Below are positions 51,346 through 57,304 of a stretch of 64,000 bases of DNA, one piece after another. Position numbers and translations under genes: made by a program. Within the stretch, counting starts at the first letter, position 1. Each line of letters begins with the position of its first letter. Where the stretch lies: contig NW_003314407.1 in assembly GCF_000143415.4 (NCBI RefSeq), positions 62,001 through 126,000 of the forward strand, in the 5' to 3' direction. Under the pieces are notes generated by a model. That model searched no databases. It saw only the letters and a program-made list of their open reading frames with translations, and was not told where the DNA came from. Origin of the DNA: Selaginella moellendorffii. Lineage: Eukaryota > Plantae > Lycopodiophyta.

Positions 51346-53328
51346 TTATCTCATCCCATCTAACAACGTCGCCTGCGCAATCACCTGGTTGATCACGCCC
51401 TCCACAATCTCTCTTCTCAGCTCTCCAAAGAGCGCCGCAACTTCCTCATGCAGCAGCTGGAGTGACTCGTCACCACATCCGGCAGCCCGGTAAAGAACGC
51501 CCATCTTCGACAGCGTCTCGAAGTTCCCGGGAGCAGTCTCGTGTAGGATTCTCATGTAGTCGCCAGCGCTCGGAAGCTCCGGGTGCTTGAGCACGCAGAC
51601 CGCAGAGTAACGCTCCACCTGTGCCGCACGGATGCAATCCTTCTCCTCGTCGCTGAAACCCCTCGCAGTCATCCTCTTCTCCAAGTCCAAAACTTCGTCG
51701 AGGGTCTTCTGCGCGTCACCTCGACGACGATCATAGAACTTAAAGCTGGCGAGAAGATCCTTGTTCGTCCTCTCCAAGACGCACCGCTTGCAAGAGCACT
51801 CAAAGTCGAGGCGCTTGCACTTCACCTCCCGCGCCGGCAACGGAGCCAAGAGCAGTGGTTCCATGCTCCCAGTCGCCTCGAGATAAGAGAGTAGAACCTC
51901 GTCACCGGCACTCATGTTCCTGGCAGCCCGGATGAACATCACGCGTCCGAAGCACACCTTGGAGGCATTGGGAGTGCACGAGTGATTGAAAAAGCCGCTC
52001 GAGGCCCAGACTCCGGCGATCCAGGCATCTCCGGCCTGAGTGGTGAAGCCGCACCGGTGGCCAACTCGTCTCACTCGCTCGATATCCACCTCCTCAACTT
52101 TCGATCCCGGCGGTACCACAACTCTTCCAATGTTGCACTTGAAGCGATCCAAGTCCGGTACCGTCGTCATCTTGCTCGCGTCCGCCATCGCATAGATGTG
52201 GTACCGTGGCCTGCTGGAAGTGCTGCAAGATCGTATCAGCTCCACGTACAAATCCCTGTCCGCGTTTTCGATCCTCGGAGTCTTCACGTACGCAGTCGGG
52301 TTGCAAACGATGAGCAGCTCCCCCCGCCTTACGTCCCGAGTGAGATACACACCTCTTCCTCGACCGTCCGGAGTCATCCTCAGCTCCAGAGGTCCGAAGT
52401 AGTCACTACACTTGGGTTCCACCTTCCGGCCAAGCACGAAGTCCGTGATATCGTACTCACCGTCCCGGCTCTCCCGCAAGTAAGTCCTGGATCTCTCCAA
52501 GTCGATCGAGACGTCAGGCGGAGCGTCCGGCAGCGCCACAGCCGACTGGAAGCACGGAAGTGCGAGCTCGTGCTCCTGGAGCGCGGTCAGGCTCTTGCCT
52601 TTGCACCACAGGCTCCGTGCATGGTGGCTATCGGACGCCCCCGGGATCTTGGTGGCGGTCTCGGCGTCCACAAAGGCCTCCTCGTACCGTCGCAGCCGGA
52701 GCCTCGCCTCGGCTCTCCTGGAGAAGACTTGCTTCTCCAAGACACCGTAAGTTGGAGCTCCGCTCTTGGCTCTCATGTCCAGCAGCTCGGTGTAGTACAG
52801 CTCGGCCAGCACGTAGCTCCCTCGACTGAGCAACGCGTTGGCTTCCTTGAGGAGCCTCCCGAGCGGCTTGGCGCTGGCGGCTCTCGCGAGTCCCAGGAAC
52901 TCCACGGACGCGGGGCTGGAGACTTGCAGCGCGGACGAGAAGCACAGCGGCTCTTTGATGGCAACTCTGGCATTTGGCGGAAACAAGAGCTCGCCATCTT
53001 CCTGCCTCGAGGTGGAGGCGACGGCATTGAAGACGTGCAGCAGCGCACAGCCGCGGTCGTTTCCACCGTCCTCCTCCTGCTCCACGAGGCACAGCACCGC
53101 ATTGGCGGCCGGGAGAGCTGCGGAGGTGCATATCTTAGCATACACTACGCGACCGTGATAGCAAACCTCGCGGCTGAGGCACCGGGTTCCAACGCAGGCG
53201 TCCACCATGTCCAGCTTCCTCAGCCCTGGCAGCGGCGCCGATGAGAGCTTGCATCCATCGCTCATCGCCGTGCCGGTGGCATTGGGCACGGCGGCCTTGA
53301 ACGCGCGCAGCAGCACCTCCTTATCCAT
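51346..53328 (-). CDS. TPR + SET-domain methyltransferase (ATXR1/SDG35/SMYD-like), intronless
   Basis: TPR helices, GRGRGVY, FFNHSCTPNA, GDEVLLSY, post-SET FECSCKRC; first ATG at 53328. Confidence 0.88.
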   Translation of the reverse strand: MDKEVLLRAFKAAVPNATGTAMSDGCKLSSAPLPGLRKLDMVDACVGTRCLSREVCYHGRVVYAKICTSAALPAANAVLCLVEQEEDGGNDRGCALLHVFNAVASTSRQEDGELLFPPNARVAIKEPLCFSSALQVSSPASVEFLGLARAASAKPLGRLLKEANALLSRGSYVLAELYYTELLDMRAKSGAPTYGVLEKQVFSRRAEARLRLRRYEEAFVDAETATKIPGASDSHHARSLWCKGKSLTALQEHELALPCFQSAVALPDAPPDVSIDLERSRTYLRESRDGEYDITDFVLGRKVEPKCSDYFGPLELRMTPDGRGRGVYLTRDVRRGELLIVCNPTAYVKTPRIENADRDLYVELIRSCSTSSRPRYHIYAMADASKMTTVPDLDRFKCNIGRVVVPPGSKVEEVDIERVRRVGHRCGFTTQAGDAWIAGVWASSGFFNHSCTPNASKVCFGRVMFIRAARNMSAGDEVLLSYLEATGSMEPLLLAPLPAREVKCKRLDFECSCKRCVLERTNKDLLASFKFYDRRRGDAQKTLDEVLDLEKRMTARGFSDEEKDCIRAAQVERYSAVCVLKHPELPSAGDYMRILHETAPGNFETLSKMGVLYRAAGCGDESLQLLHEEVAALFGELRREIVEGVINQVIAQATLLDGMR

Positions 53329-53649
53329 TGCACCCAAGCTCTAGGGTTTATGCCACGTCACACGAAAGCATATTCCCAGGATTTTACCTACATTCTTTTC
53401 TCAAGGGGTGAATCTCCATCCGCGACCAACGGTCGCAACGGCCACCACGTGTTGTTTGTCTGTTGGCCACAGCAACTAAAGCGTAAGCGTTAATGTGGGT
53501 TTTTAGCGCATATTCTGTCGCATTCACACACGCAACACTTGAGCTCCTGCCAAGGGAAAAAGGGAGGGACGCAAACGCCCAACGAGCTCCCAGTTTTTTT
53601 AGGTTTGCGCGTTGCCAAGATCGATCCGGCTGCGCCGACGGAGGTGTAA

Positions 53650-56494
53650 ATGGCGCCGATCTGGTCGGCGGCGCTGCCACTGCTGCTTCTTCTTCGTCAC
53701 ACCATAGGTAGGCGCGCGCCGGTGATTCTTTGCTTGTCCTGCATTCCTTGATCTCTTCCATAGTTCCGGGGCATAGCATTCCTGCTGCATTCTCATCTTG
53801 TTCCAGACTGGTCACTAACGCCTCCAGGAGAGAGCAGGATATCACGGTGTGGCACTCGATCCGGATCAAGTGGTAGCAGCGCACCGCCGACCTTGGCTGC
53901 TTGAGGAAATCGACCAGGGCCACCATCCTCCGGGTGTAGGACATCACCCTCCTGGAGTGGGGCATCATCCTCCGGGCGTTGGACACCATCCTCCCGGTGT
54001 TGGACACCATCCTCCCGGCGTTGGACATCATCCTCCTGGTGTCGGTCACCATCTCCCCAAGCGTAAGTCTGCTTAGCTTCTCTTGGCAGCAATGTAGATC
54101 CACTCATGCGTGAATTCATGCTCTACAGCCTCGTCGCTAGCTCGGGCATTTGTGGCACTGCAAGCCTGGAAACGCATGATCTTTCGCGACCCGCTAAACA
54201 TTACCGGGAGCTGGGTGGGCAGCGAAGTATGTAACTACAGAGGTGTCTTTTGCGGGCCTTCTCTCCACGACCCTACACTCCGCGTTGTGAGTGGGATGTA
54301 CGTGTACATGTAGACCATGCTTGCGCGGTATTTCACTGACCTTTTGATGCGTTGCTTGTTATTCCAGTGATCTGAATCACGCCAATCTTGGTGGTCAACT
54401 CCCCAGTGAACTGGGACTTCTGACCGAGCTCGGTATCTTGTGAGTGTGGTAAATTCATCCACCGTCCAAGAGTTCTTGCTTATCTTTTTCTTTTCCTTGT
54501 CCAGTCATGTGAACAGCAACGAATTTACAGGGGGGCTACCCGAAAGTCTGAAAAATCTCGTTCTCCTTGGAGAACTGTAAGCATTTGCTGTTTAGCTGTT
54601 GGTCTTGACGTTAATATTTTTACAGGGACGTAAGTAACAACAAGCTGTCTGGAGTATTTCCTGCTGTTACTCTGCAATTGCCAAGTCTTATATATCTGTA
54701 AGTTGACACTTTTTCTTCGATATGATATGTAAGTTTGGTACTTTTGCAGGGATATAAGATTCAACCGGTTTTATGGAAGCATACCCGCAGAAATCTTTGA
54801 TAAGAAGCTGGATGCACTGTAAGTTACTATACTGCAATTATCTGAGACAGGACTTGACGTTTGCTGTCTTCAGCTTTGTCAACAACAATAACTTCGGAAA
54901 TCCTATCCCGGCCAATTTCGGAAACTCTCCAGTTTCTGTTGTGTACGTGTCCTGTTGCACATTTTTTATGCTAAAACAATTTGTTCTGTTGCTGTCATGC
55001 TGTAGGGTCCTCGCCAATAACCAGTTCACTGGAAATATTCCGAATAGCTTAGGAAGCATGTCGAGGACATTAAATGAAATGTGAGTGACGACGAAATGTC
55101 GACCATACTGCGCCTGATCCTTGGAGTTCTATTGCAGAGTATTTCTCAACAACAGTCTCGCGGGTGCTCTACCATCAGAAATCGGACTTTTGAATCAAGT
55201 ATCTGTATTGTAAGATGTTTGTTTTTTGTTTCGAAGTTTCTAATACCTGCTCCTGTGTGAAGTGACGTGGGCTTCAACAAACTAAGTAGCGGTTTGCCCG
55301 ACAGCATCGCGAACATGGTTGAGCTGGTTGAATTCAACGTCGGAAACAATTTCCTCTCCGGAATTCTGACTGACAATGTCTGCAACTTGCCGAAGATAAG
55401 AAATCTGTGAGTTTCGCTAAACGGTCTTGTATGTATGTTAGTAAACCTTTTGTGTGTGCAGGACCTTTTCTAACAACTACTTCATTGGGGAGAGTCCCTC
55501 GTGCGCGTCTCTATCAAGACGAGGGTATGCATCGCACTCGTTCATGTTGTTTTTTGCGTGACGCAATTTGTTTTTGCAGTGTGACGGTAAGTACGAGCGG
55601 GAACTGTTTCTCAAGTCAGAGTGGCCAGAAGTCAGGCAAAGAATGCAGAGATTTCTACGGTAAGCTCGTTAGGAAGTTATGCGGATTGTGCTAACTCTTG
55701 TTTTTCTTCTTCTTCTTCTTCTCTCTCAGCTCCACCTCCACCTTCAGCACCAGCTGCTCCACCGGTGGGAACACCCCCACTATCTCCGACACCTCTCCCT
55801 CCTAGCCCGATATTTTTTCCACCTCCAACTCCACTGGCACCATTCGGCTCTCCACCTCCACCGTCGCCAATCGGCTCTCCTCCTCCCCCACTATCTCCGA
55901 CACCTCTCCCTCCTAGTCCGATTTTATTTCCACCTCCACCTCCACCGTCACCAACCGTTTCTCCTCCTCCAGCATCCTGTCCATCGGGATATAGCAGGGG
56001 TCAAAATTCGGGACATTGCTTCCAGCTTGTGAAGCAGCATGCAACCTGGAGCAATGCCGAGAAATATTGCGCACAACATGGGGGTCACTTGGCAGCAGTG
56101 GCGGATTTTAACGAACTCAAGGACATCGGCGACTTTTGCAGCCAGGCTCCCCCGAATCAAGGTAAGCACGTAGACTGTCTCGTTCGATATTTCTAACAGG
56201 AATTATCCTCTTGCAGCATTGGTGGATCCTTATAGTCCTAAAGGTCAAGGATGTTATCTGGGAGGCCAGAAAGCGAACGCCTCCTGGATCTGGCCGAGTT
56301 CTCCATGCATCAACTTCAACAGCAGTTACTGGAACTTCTTGGAGCCGAATAACTTGTATGGAAACGAAAACTGCGTGTCCATAAAGTATGAGCCCCCAAT
56401 CTTGCGAGCCTCGGCTTCTTCACTGGCATACATGCTCAACGATCTATTCTGCGAACACGAGCTTCCGTTCGTATGCGCACCAACAAGATGCTGA
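53650..56494 (+). CDS. LRR-extensin-like secreted protein with N-terminal His/Pro repeat and C-terminal C-type lectin domain
   Basis: Signal-like peptide; (GHHPPGV)n; LRX cap AFVALQAWK...WVGSEVCNYRGVFC; ~10 LRRs; Cys-rich linker; SP3-4 region; CTLD. Splicing of the first intron is ambiguous. Confidence 0.85.
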
Positions 56495-56580
56495 GCCCGA
56501 GACTAAAAAGTTACGTTTTATATAAAATACAACCCGGCCAAGTCCTCCCAGGTAAACAGAAAGAACACAATCGAAGCGTT

Positions 56581-57261
56581 TTAACTGCTTTCATCTTTTG
56601 CAGCATTAGCAGCAACATCACCACCACCAGCAGCAGCACGCAGCGCTTTTCTCAAGCCGAGCACTATAAACAGATTCGTGACTGTAAGGAGCGATTCGGC
56701 ACCGCCGTGAAGCCAATCAACGTTCGAGAGAGATGTGCCGTAGTGAAGTTTGGCTGCATGCAACACACAGAGTTCAAATCGTCATCAAATCGTGGATATA
56801 AGGCTTTCGCATTTGCGAGCGTACCATAGATGCCAGCAGGAACTGTGGTAGCACAGAAGCGGTTCCAAAGACGTACATATGTTGCAAGTTAGATCCACAA
56901 CCAAAACAAGACGAGAAGACTTACTTGTAGCTGCGACGAATGCGAGTAGAAAGTAGAAGCCAAAGAGGGTGAGCTGGGGCGCAGTCTTGGACTTGGTAAG
57001 GTGATAGAGGAAGCCGAGATACGGGAAGAGCGATGCAGCAAACAGCTGAGACGCCAGGCTCTGTGAATTGACGCCACCGGGAGACCAAGGATCCACCACA
57101 GTCGCAGCAGTAGCAGCGACACTAGAGGCCGCGAGCTCCACCAATTCAGTAGCACCTGTTGCTGCTGTCAATCTTCCGGGCCTGCGATTGCGAAGACGGC
57201 CATTGGGATGCAAACCCGTTGTCGCTGGAGGAGGAGCTCCCGTGAATGCTATCACCACCAT
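56581..57261 (-). CDS. DUF3593-family plastid membrane protein
   Basis: Transit-like N-terminus; LFAASLFPYLGFLY, TIPAGIY, SLSNVDWLHGGAESLLT; 3 exons. Confidence 0.85.
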
Positions 57262-57304
57262 CGTCCTAAACGAGATAGGTAAGTAGAGACTGACTGTCTC
57301 CCCT

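Follow-up and report, generated by a model that had tools for sequence, protein, structure and literature searches.

A leucine-rich repeat extensin-like protein ending in a C-type lectin domain in the lycophyte Selaginella moellendorffii

Proteins of the leucine-rich repeat extensin (LRX) family are central to RALF/FERONIA wall-integrity signalling in plants, while the C-type lectin domain (CTLD) is a protein module represented in plants by another type of protein, the C-type lectin receptor-like kinase (LecRLK), of which a single one is present in Arabidopsis. In this paper, we describe a gene from Selaginella moellendorffii, here called LRX-CTLD, whose product combines the leucine-rich repeat (LRR) domain of an LRX with a C-terminal CTLD. 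The gene is located on the plus strand of the window analysed, which is a stretch of 64,000 nucleotides of contig NW_003314407.1 (positions 62,001 to 126,000 of the forward strand); all the coordinates reported below refer to this window.

The closest described systems are moss proteins. Four of the five LRXs of Physcomitrella have a C-terminal C-type lectin domain, and their extensin-like region is short and devoid of tyrosine, as it also is in the Selaginella protein (MacAlister et al., 2016, Plant J 85:193, PMC4738400). LRX-CTLD is a full-length homologue of these proteins, and the original prediction, which was made from the nucleotide sequence and considered the architecture to be undescribed, must be corrected on this point, because the moss proteins have been on record since 2016. 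The catalogue of LRX proteins from P. patens and S. moellendorffii compiled by Liu et al. (2016) makes no mention of a lectin, and our search of the full-text literature on Marchantia, Selaginella, bryophytes and moss retrieved neither a description of an LRX joined to a C-type lectin beyond that of MacAlister et al. (2016) nor any functional study. The architecture appears to be known but barely noticed, and its presence in a vascular plant is apparently unreported in the literature searched.

As for the LRR part, the reference proteins are Arabidopsis LRX2 and LRX8 (6QXP, 6QWN and 6TME; PMC7132299). Binding of RALF4 needs Phe109 and His150 of LRX8, which correspond to Phe90 and His131 of LRX2, and is abolished by their mutation; in LRX2, Phe202, Glu248, Glu295 and Gln296 contact the RALF helix, and Cys138 provides the inter-chain disulphide of the LRX dimer (Moussu et al., 2020, PMC7132299).

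Gene structure and transcription

A three-frame reading of the region 53400-56800, combined with inspection of the splice sites and refined using RNA data, yielded the gene model detailed in Table 1. The coding sequence (CDS) spans exactly 53650-56494, from an ATG at 53650 to a TGA at 56492-56494, and consists of 1950 nt distributed over 15 exons and encoding 649 amino acids (aa). All of the 14 introns are of the GT..AG type and are 49-130 nt long. Exons 4-10 and 12 carry exactly one LRR each (69-75 nt), and the introns between them measure 49-65 nt. The original prediction had proposed that an LRX-type cap, LRRs, a Cys-rich linker, a short SPPPP region and a CTLD follow one another in a single frame over this same span, the limits of which are exactly the ATG and the stop codon. 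This is borne out by the 15-exon model and by the Pfam matches to LRRNT_2 and Lectin_C; the peptides quoted in the prediction, as well as the EPN and LND motifs, are all present and in frame.

LRX-CTLD is a real, expressed gene, and its LRR, spacer and CTLD parts are carried on a single transcript, as had been predicted. Of the words sampled from the 3-kb stretch, about half occurred in 20 public runs belonging to at least seven studies, a fraction equal to the exonic share of the stretch. The contigs of four runs from four studies (X1, X2, X9 and X11) were placed on 53300-57300. These runs are stored as contigs, and their RNA nature could only be guessed; that they are indeed RNA follows from the consistent removal of the introns. 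The list of plus-strand GT..AG joints comprised 13 entries, of which 12 are inside the CDS, and each of them was found in 4/4 runs at predicted exon borders; they include the joint between exons 1 and 2 (53707>53838) and that between exons 14 and 15 (56161>56217), both seen in four runs. The CDS joint 54062>54129 is outside this list, and is visible from the contig pieces. The joint 55659>55730 was deduced from contigs of 1337-1480 nt, which have 58-76 nt left past exon 13, and from the depth fraction, in that the depth in the bin 55578-55711 was 81/134 of the contig depth, corresponding to the length of exon 13 as aligned.

Single contigs extend from the 5' untranslated region (UTR) across all the LRR exons into exon 14, and the last LRR and tail exons are spliced onto exon 14 in the RNA contigs of at least three runs. 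Within exon 14, the overlap between neighbouring contigs (e.g. 55758-55914 and 55885-56531 in X9) is exactly 30 nt, and the breaks coincide with the positions of single-nucleotide polymorphisms, as is usual for k=31 unitigs where a site is heterozygous. Because contigs reach into exon 14, and because this exon contains the spacer and the N-terminal half of the CTLD in a single uninterrupted frame, the LRR and lectin parts are on one mRNA.

The RNA contigs showed 12 variant positions, eight of them synonymous and four non-synonymous (in three codons), and two indels, both in frame. This pattern fits purifying selection, the numbers being small.

Table 1. Exons, untranslated regions and calcium-site motifs of LRX-CTLD in the window.
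Feature	Position	Strand	Content
5' UTR	53504-53649 (minimum extent)	+	RNA contig starts: 53504 (X1), 53590 (X9, X11), 53615 (X2)
Exon 1	53650-53707	+	Signal peptide (MAPIWSAALPLLLLLRHTIG), then phase-1 intron
Exon 2	53838-54062	+	Carries the 21-nt tandem repeats (HHPPGVG units)
Exon 3	54129-54297	+	LRX-type N-terminal cap, LRRNT_2, including Phe135 of GVFC
Exon 4	54368-54439	+	LRR
Exon 5	54505-54576	+	LRR
Exon 6	54626-54697	+	LRR
Exon 7	54750-54818	+	LRR
Exon 8	54874-54942	+	LRR
Exon 9	55006-55080	+	LRR
Exon 10	55138-55209	+	LRR
Exon 11	55263-55406	+	Two LRRs
Exon 12	55462-55524	+	Last of exons 4-12 (54368-55524: about 10 LRRs and start of Cys-rich tail)
Exon 13	55580-55659	+	Remainder of Cys-rich tail, to ...KECRDFY
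Exon 14	55730-56161	+	Pro-rich spacer 55730-55977 (aa 414-496), then N-terminal half of CTLD 55978-56161 (aa 497-557)
Exon 15	56217-56494	+	C-terminal half of CTLD with EPN, Glu608, LND and stop codon
EPN, Glu600-Pro-Asn602	56342-56350	+	In frame
Glu608	56366-56368	+	In frame
LND with Asn632-Asp633	56435-56443	+	In frame
3' UTR	56495-56531 (minimum extent)	+	CTLD contigs end at 56531 in 4/4 runs

The locus is very compact. A GT..AG joint just past the stop codon (56548>56601) may be a 3'-UTR intron, and CT..AC joints in the interval 56548-57300 of the window indicate a minus-strand gene starting some 100-300 nt from the 3' end of LRX-CTLD. Upstream, the divergent neighbour (51346-53337, minus strand) is a long SET-domain open reading frame (51349-53328), whose product shares 97% identity with isoform X2 of S. 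moellendorffii LOC9644457; two more S. moellendorffii paralogues of this neighbour were found at 75% and 44% identity.

The LRX half and the moss relatives

LRX-CTLD is homologous over its full length to moss LRX-like proteins ending in a C-type lectin domain. When 1.84 billion cluster representatives were searched exhaustively with HMMER, the C-terminal half of the CTLD serving as the query, only 18 matches were obtained, the top three being plant proteins at 50-53% identity and the others animal-type multi-CTLD proteins at 27-47%; a kinase domain was absent in all 10 of these 18 hits that were scanned with Pfam. One of the top three (P0003) is a 623-aa protein of Physcomitrium patens containing LRRNT_2, LRRs and Lectin_C. 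A database search with P0003 returned a tight group of proteins at 708-859 bits, including those of P. patens and Ceratodon purpureus, with ordinary LRX proteins scoring 330 bits or less; the full-length protein encoded by LRX-CTLD itself did not appear in this search, and exact look-ups of the product of the SET-domain neighbour, of P0138 and of P0003 gave no match. Beginning with the HPPGVG motif and up to the final Cys of the CTLD, LRX-CTLD and the moss group are colinear, their LRR domains being 46-55% identical and their CTLDs 47-53%.

The moss proteins, which are annotated at NCBI as 'leucine-rich repeat extensin-like protein 3/4', share with LRX-CTLD a signal peptide, HPPGVG-type repeats, the LRX cap and LRRs, a Cys-rich tail, a short Tyr-free Ser-Pro spacer and a CTLD with the pattern EPN...E...(M)LND. 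They differ in their C-terminus: about 45-50 more residues, with eight more Cys, follow the CTLD in all the moss sequences collected, whereas the Selaginella protein stops right after the CTLD and ends in ...PFVCAPTRC. In addition, there are 6-7 HHPPGVG units in LRX-CTLD versus about two in moss, and the host of LRX-CTLD is, unlike those of the moss family, a vascular plant. The Cys-rich tail of the moss proteins (P0003:578-623 and homologues) looks EGF-like by eye, although it is not called by Pfam, and a CTLD followed by such a tail is the order found in animal selectins.

In a maximum-likelihood tree built from the LRR columns only, LRX-CTLD was sister to the moss LRX-CTLD clade with moderate support (SH-aLRT 82, from a quick search), and was placed apart from another Selaginella LRX and from the LRXs of ferns and seed plants. 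The gene of Ceratodon (L001:1501-4293) has a single intron of 831 nt, which is in phase 1 and follows the signal peptide, i.e. it has the same place and phase as intron 1 of the Selaginella gene. From the repeats through the tail, and hence including the whole LRR-Pro-CTLD part, the Ceratodon gene is one uninterrupted exon, and for the family an artefact of the gene model is thereby ruled out. Whether the fusion arose once can be judged from the introns at only one comparable position, Ceratodon having one intron. The difference between the 14 introns of Selaginella and the single intron of Ceratodon implies either massive loss in the moss or gain in Selaginella. The distribution of the architecture in moss and lycophyte, along with the tree, suggests as a hypothesis that the fusion would predate the split between these plants and would have been lost later, on the basis of two lineages and moderate support.

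Turning to the protein itself, residues 1-20 form the segment of highest hydropathy and are the predicted signal peptide (Kyte-Doolittle; judged by hydropathy). Outside it, no 19-residue window in the whole protein exceeds a Kyte-Doolittle mean of 1.36, in agreement with the predicted lack of a transmembrane helix. Downstream of the signal peptide lies a tandem repeat (53917-54057; tandem repeat finder) with a period of 21 nt and 6.4 copies, which translates into 6-7 HHPPGVG units at aa 47-90 and had gone unmentioned in the original prediction. This array is length-polymorphic, an X9 contig being shorter by 21 nt, that is by one HHPPGVG unit. A His/Pro/Gly repeat at the N-terminus is kept from moss to lycophyte, and might be a pH- or metal-sensitive element.

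In the LRX domain, Pfam detected LRRNT_2 in exon 3 (25.4 bits) and likewise LRR_1. The LRR domain of LRX-CTLD is 46-55% identical to LRX proteins ranging from moss to angiosperms over about 314 columns, and the moss homologue could be matched to LRX2 (6QXP) over 311 residues with E = 2e-86. Like Arabidopsis LRX2 and LRX8, LRX-CTLD has the LRX-specific cap, about 10-11 LRRs and a four-Cys tail, in which Cys358, Cys380, Cys396 and Cys409 align with the four Cys of the LRX2 tail. For the comparison of single residues, the numbering offset of 6QXP_A was set at +28 from Phe68, Ala114 and Cys138. The Phe and His which contact the RALF loop (LRX2 Phe90 and His131) are conserved in the Selaginella protein as Phe135 and His176, and Phe202 and Glu248 are conserved as Phe247 and Glu293. 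The equivalents of Glu295 and Gln296 are Val and Glu; with those of Phe90 and His131 kept, binding of RALF is plausible at the residue level.

The LRX module is followed by a spacer of 83 residues (aa 414-496), which is 52% Pro, contains SPPPP twice and SPPP once, and has neither Tyr nor Lys. The C-terminal extensin domain of the LRX family, in which Ser-Pro3-5 repeats are numerous and Tyr motifs allow cross-linking, is not found in it. Compared with LRX2 and LRX8, the Selaginella protein is without the long Tyr-containing extensin domain, and has a C-terminal CTLD added. An in-frame deletion of 6 nt (55882-55887) was observed in the Pro-rich spacer in X1 and X11, and probably represents the other haplotype or another allele.

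The C-type lectin domain

The CTLD comprises aa 497-649, and its first 61 residues are encoded together with the spacer, in the same exon and without a break in the frame. Lectin_C (Pfam PF00059) was detected in both CTLD exons, with 19.6 bits for profile positions 3-29 and 23.6 bits for positions 43-105. By sequence, the solved structures closest to the C-terminal half of the domain are those of EPN-type Ca2+ lectins, namely codakine, SIGNR1, P- and E-selectin and Mincle. When the sequences are aligned, the positions that provide the ligands of Ca2+ site 2 in animal CTLDs are occupied by Glu600-Pro-Asn602, Glu608 and Asn632-Asp633, and all five ligands are present. They are kept in LRX-CTLD and in 12 of the 13 moss sequences. 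As regards the auxiliary Ca2+ site 1, Asn603 and Asn609 are present in LRX-CTLD, but the position of Asn609 is occupied by Ala, Gly or Thr in the mosses.

Structural information was obtained from a model of the CTLD of P. patens (P0003:415-577), which is about 50% identical to that of LRX-CTLD. The first model, based on a shallow alignment, had a pLDDT of 56 and was discarded; the model obtained from a 42-row alignment including animal CTLD segments had a pLDDT of 91.2 and a pTM of 0.88. A Foldseek search of the PDB with the latter produced at least 476 matches at E <= 0.001, CTLD structures being matched by the hundred with probability 1.00, and the top 50 listed were all C-type lectin-like domains. 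The leading matches (probability 1.00, target-normalized TM scores 0.63-0.82) were lithostathine, snake-venom lectins, Dectin-2, codakine, mannose-receptor CRD4, langerin and DC-SIGN. In the ESM Atlas, the look-alikes were only generic Lectin_C clusters, below 0.9.

The domain may be compared with the EPN-type CTLDs of animals (codakine 2VUV, SIGNR1 3ZHG, DC-SIGN, langerin, Mincle, Dectin-2, mannose-receptor CRD4 and the selectins). It is like them in the long-form Cys pattern, in the EPN, Glu and Asn-Asp of Ca2+ site 2 and, as judged on the model of the moss homologue, in the fold, with target-normalized TM scores of 0.7-0.82. It is unlike them in that the identity is only 20-25%, CYLGG takes the place of WIGL, there are additional Cys residues, ENC and LND are separated by a longer loop, and the context is that of a plant wall protein. 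The plant C-type LecRLK, on the other hand, combines a transmembrane helix with a kinase domain; the Selaginella protein is without both, its stop codon being directly after the CTLD.

Two further proteins with a CTLD deserve mention. P0012 (145 aa, Logan) is a short CTLD protein having between ENC and WND the same unusually long loop as the plant LRX-CTLDs. In the moss paralogue P0027, a JGI moss-type protein, EPN is replaced by QPD and LND by LSD. Among animal lectins QPD is the motif of the galactose type, and its occurrence in P0027 hints at a diversified sugar specificity within the LRX-CTLD family.

Proposed function and alternatives

Of the overall interpretation advanced in the original prediction, the anatomy has stood, in that one transcript encodes a secreted LRX module, a Pro-rich linker and an EPN-type CTLD, and the novelty has not. 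Its idea of a sensor coupling peptide-binding LRRs to a glycan-binding head remains plausible at the residue level.

The reading that we prefer, with moderate confidence, is that LRX-CTLD is an LRX-family chimera, secreted and resident in the wall, in which RALF-binding LRRs would be connected by a stiff spacer to a lectin head providing Ca2+-dependent anchoring to glycans. By analogy with Arabidopsis LRX2 and LRX8, the LRR domain would bind a folded RALF peptide. The short Tyr-free Pro-rich stretch, probably arabinosylated on its hydroxyprolines, would act as a stiff spacer rather than as a cross-linked anchor. The CTLD, with its intact EPN-type principal Ca2+ site, would hold the protein on a wall or surface glycan in a non-covalent and Ca2+-dependent manner; the predicted glycan is one with equatorial 3,4-hydroxyls, of the mannose, glucose, GlcNAc or fucose type, mannans being the obvious candidate. 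The lectin head would then stand in for the Tyr cross-linked extensin tail of the seed-plant LRXs, and anchoring, and hence the local capture of RALF, would be reversible and would respond to apoplastic Ca2+ and to the state of the glycan.

A number of observations weigh against this reading, and should be considered together. In the LRR domain, the equivalents of two of the LRX2 residues in contact with the RALF helix are changed, Glu295 to Val and Gln296 to Glu. Also changed is LRX2 Cys138, which is replaced by Thr (NSNRFCGE of LRX2 becoming NSNEFTGG) and by Tyr or Ser in the moss homologues. In the CTLD, the auxiliary Ca2+ site 1 is unrecognizable, the WIGL..D/E-loop stretch being without acidic residues; many working CTLDs are without this site. 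The Trp of WND is replaced by Leu to give LND, and 21 residues separate the Cys of ENC from the Asn of LND, versus about 10 in the aligned animal CTLDs, so that the longer loop could reshape the sugar site. The structural model of the CTLD was made from the moss homologue and not from the Selaginella protein. Finally, as far as the transcript is concerned, the depth of the CTLD contigs is 1.1-2 times that of the LRR contigs, and one X1 contig matches only from 55986 on, with 207 nt of unrelated sequence upstream, the first 30 letters of which have no occurrence in the window. This loose end may be due to chimerism of the contig, to a paralogue or to alternative transcription, and together with the excess depth it leaves room for what may be a shorter extra transcript or the contribution of a paralogue.

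A different role for the lectin head, which we regard as unlikely, is that of an outward-facing pattern-recognition device for microbial glycans (fungal mannan, glucan or chitin-type GlcNAc), with the LRR/RALF module as the link to FERONIA-type signalling; the protein would then be a sensor in immunity instead of an anchor in the wall. It is true that the lectins closest to the CTLD by sequence and fold include the immune EPN lectins SIGNR1, Mincle, Dectin-2, DC-SIGN, langerin and mannose-receptor CRD4, and that immunity in moss is modulated by RALF signalling (PMC9933782). However, the Ca2+ site is kept and the CTLD is about 50% identical between the lycophyte and the mosses, a degree of conservation more like that expected for a constant endogenous ligand than for an arms race, and the copies per genome are few (PMC4738400).

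It seems even less probable that the CTLD binds no sugar at all, and serves instead to bind a protein or as a purely structural C-terminal cap, as is the case for many non-lectin CTLDs such as lithostathine, the antifreeze proteins and ovocleidin. Three such domains (lithostathine 1qdd, ovocleidin 1gz2 and antifreeze 2zib) are among the top fold matches of the moss model, and the missing Ca2+ site 1, LND in place of WND, the extra loop and the extra Cys are all in keeping with this view. Nevertheless, all five ligands of Ca2+ site 2 have been retained across the split between mosses and lycophytes, and one moss paralogue has the alternative sugar motif QPD, a pattern to be expected of working, rather than decayed, sugar sites. 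Lastly, that an adjacent LRX gene and a small secreted CTLD gene were read as one, as the greater depth of the CTLD contigs and the X1 contig diverging upstream of 55986 might be taken to imply, can hardly be credited, considering that no stop codon or start signal lies between the spacer and the N-terminal half of the CTLD in their common exon and frame, that the last LRR and tail exons are joined to this exon in at least three runs, and that the same domain order lies within a single exon in Ceratodon and also occurs in several P. patens paralogues.

A broader proposal can be put forward tentatively. LRX-CTLD might be an ancient RALF-binding wall module of land plants, older than the split between mosses and vascular plants and lost in euphyllophytes, in which a Ca2+-dependent lectin head, attached to a wall glycan such as mannan, takes the place of covalent extensin cross-linking, so that the capture of RALF would be tuned by apoplastic Ca2+ and by the state of the wall glycans. 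In such a module, the His-rich HHPPGVG array could add sensitivity to pH or to metals.

The immediate gain in knowledge is modest, because the architecture was already published in 2016. Even so, the fact that mosses and a lycophyte have in common the layout of an LRX with a C-type lectin, and have both kept its putative Ca2+/sugar site, points to what may be an old and conserved way of tethering a RALF-binding module to wall glycan. Plants use animal-like EPN C-type lectin domains beyond the single receptor kinase usually cited, and the moss homologues provide a tractable genetic system for LRX-CTLD.

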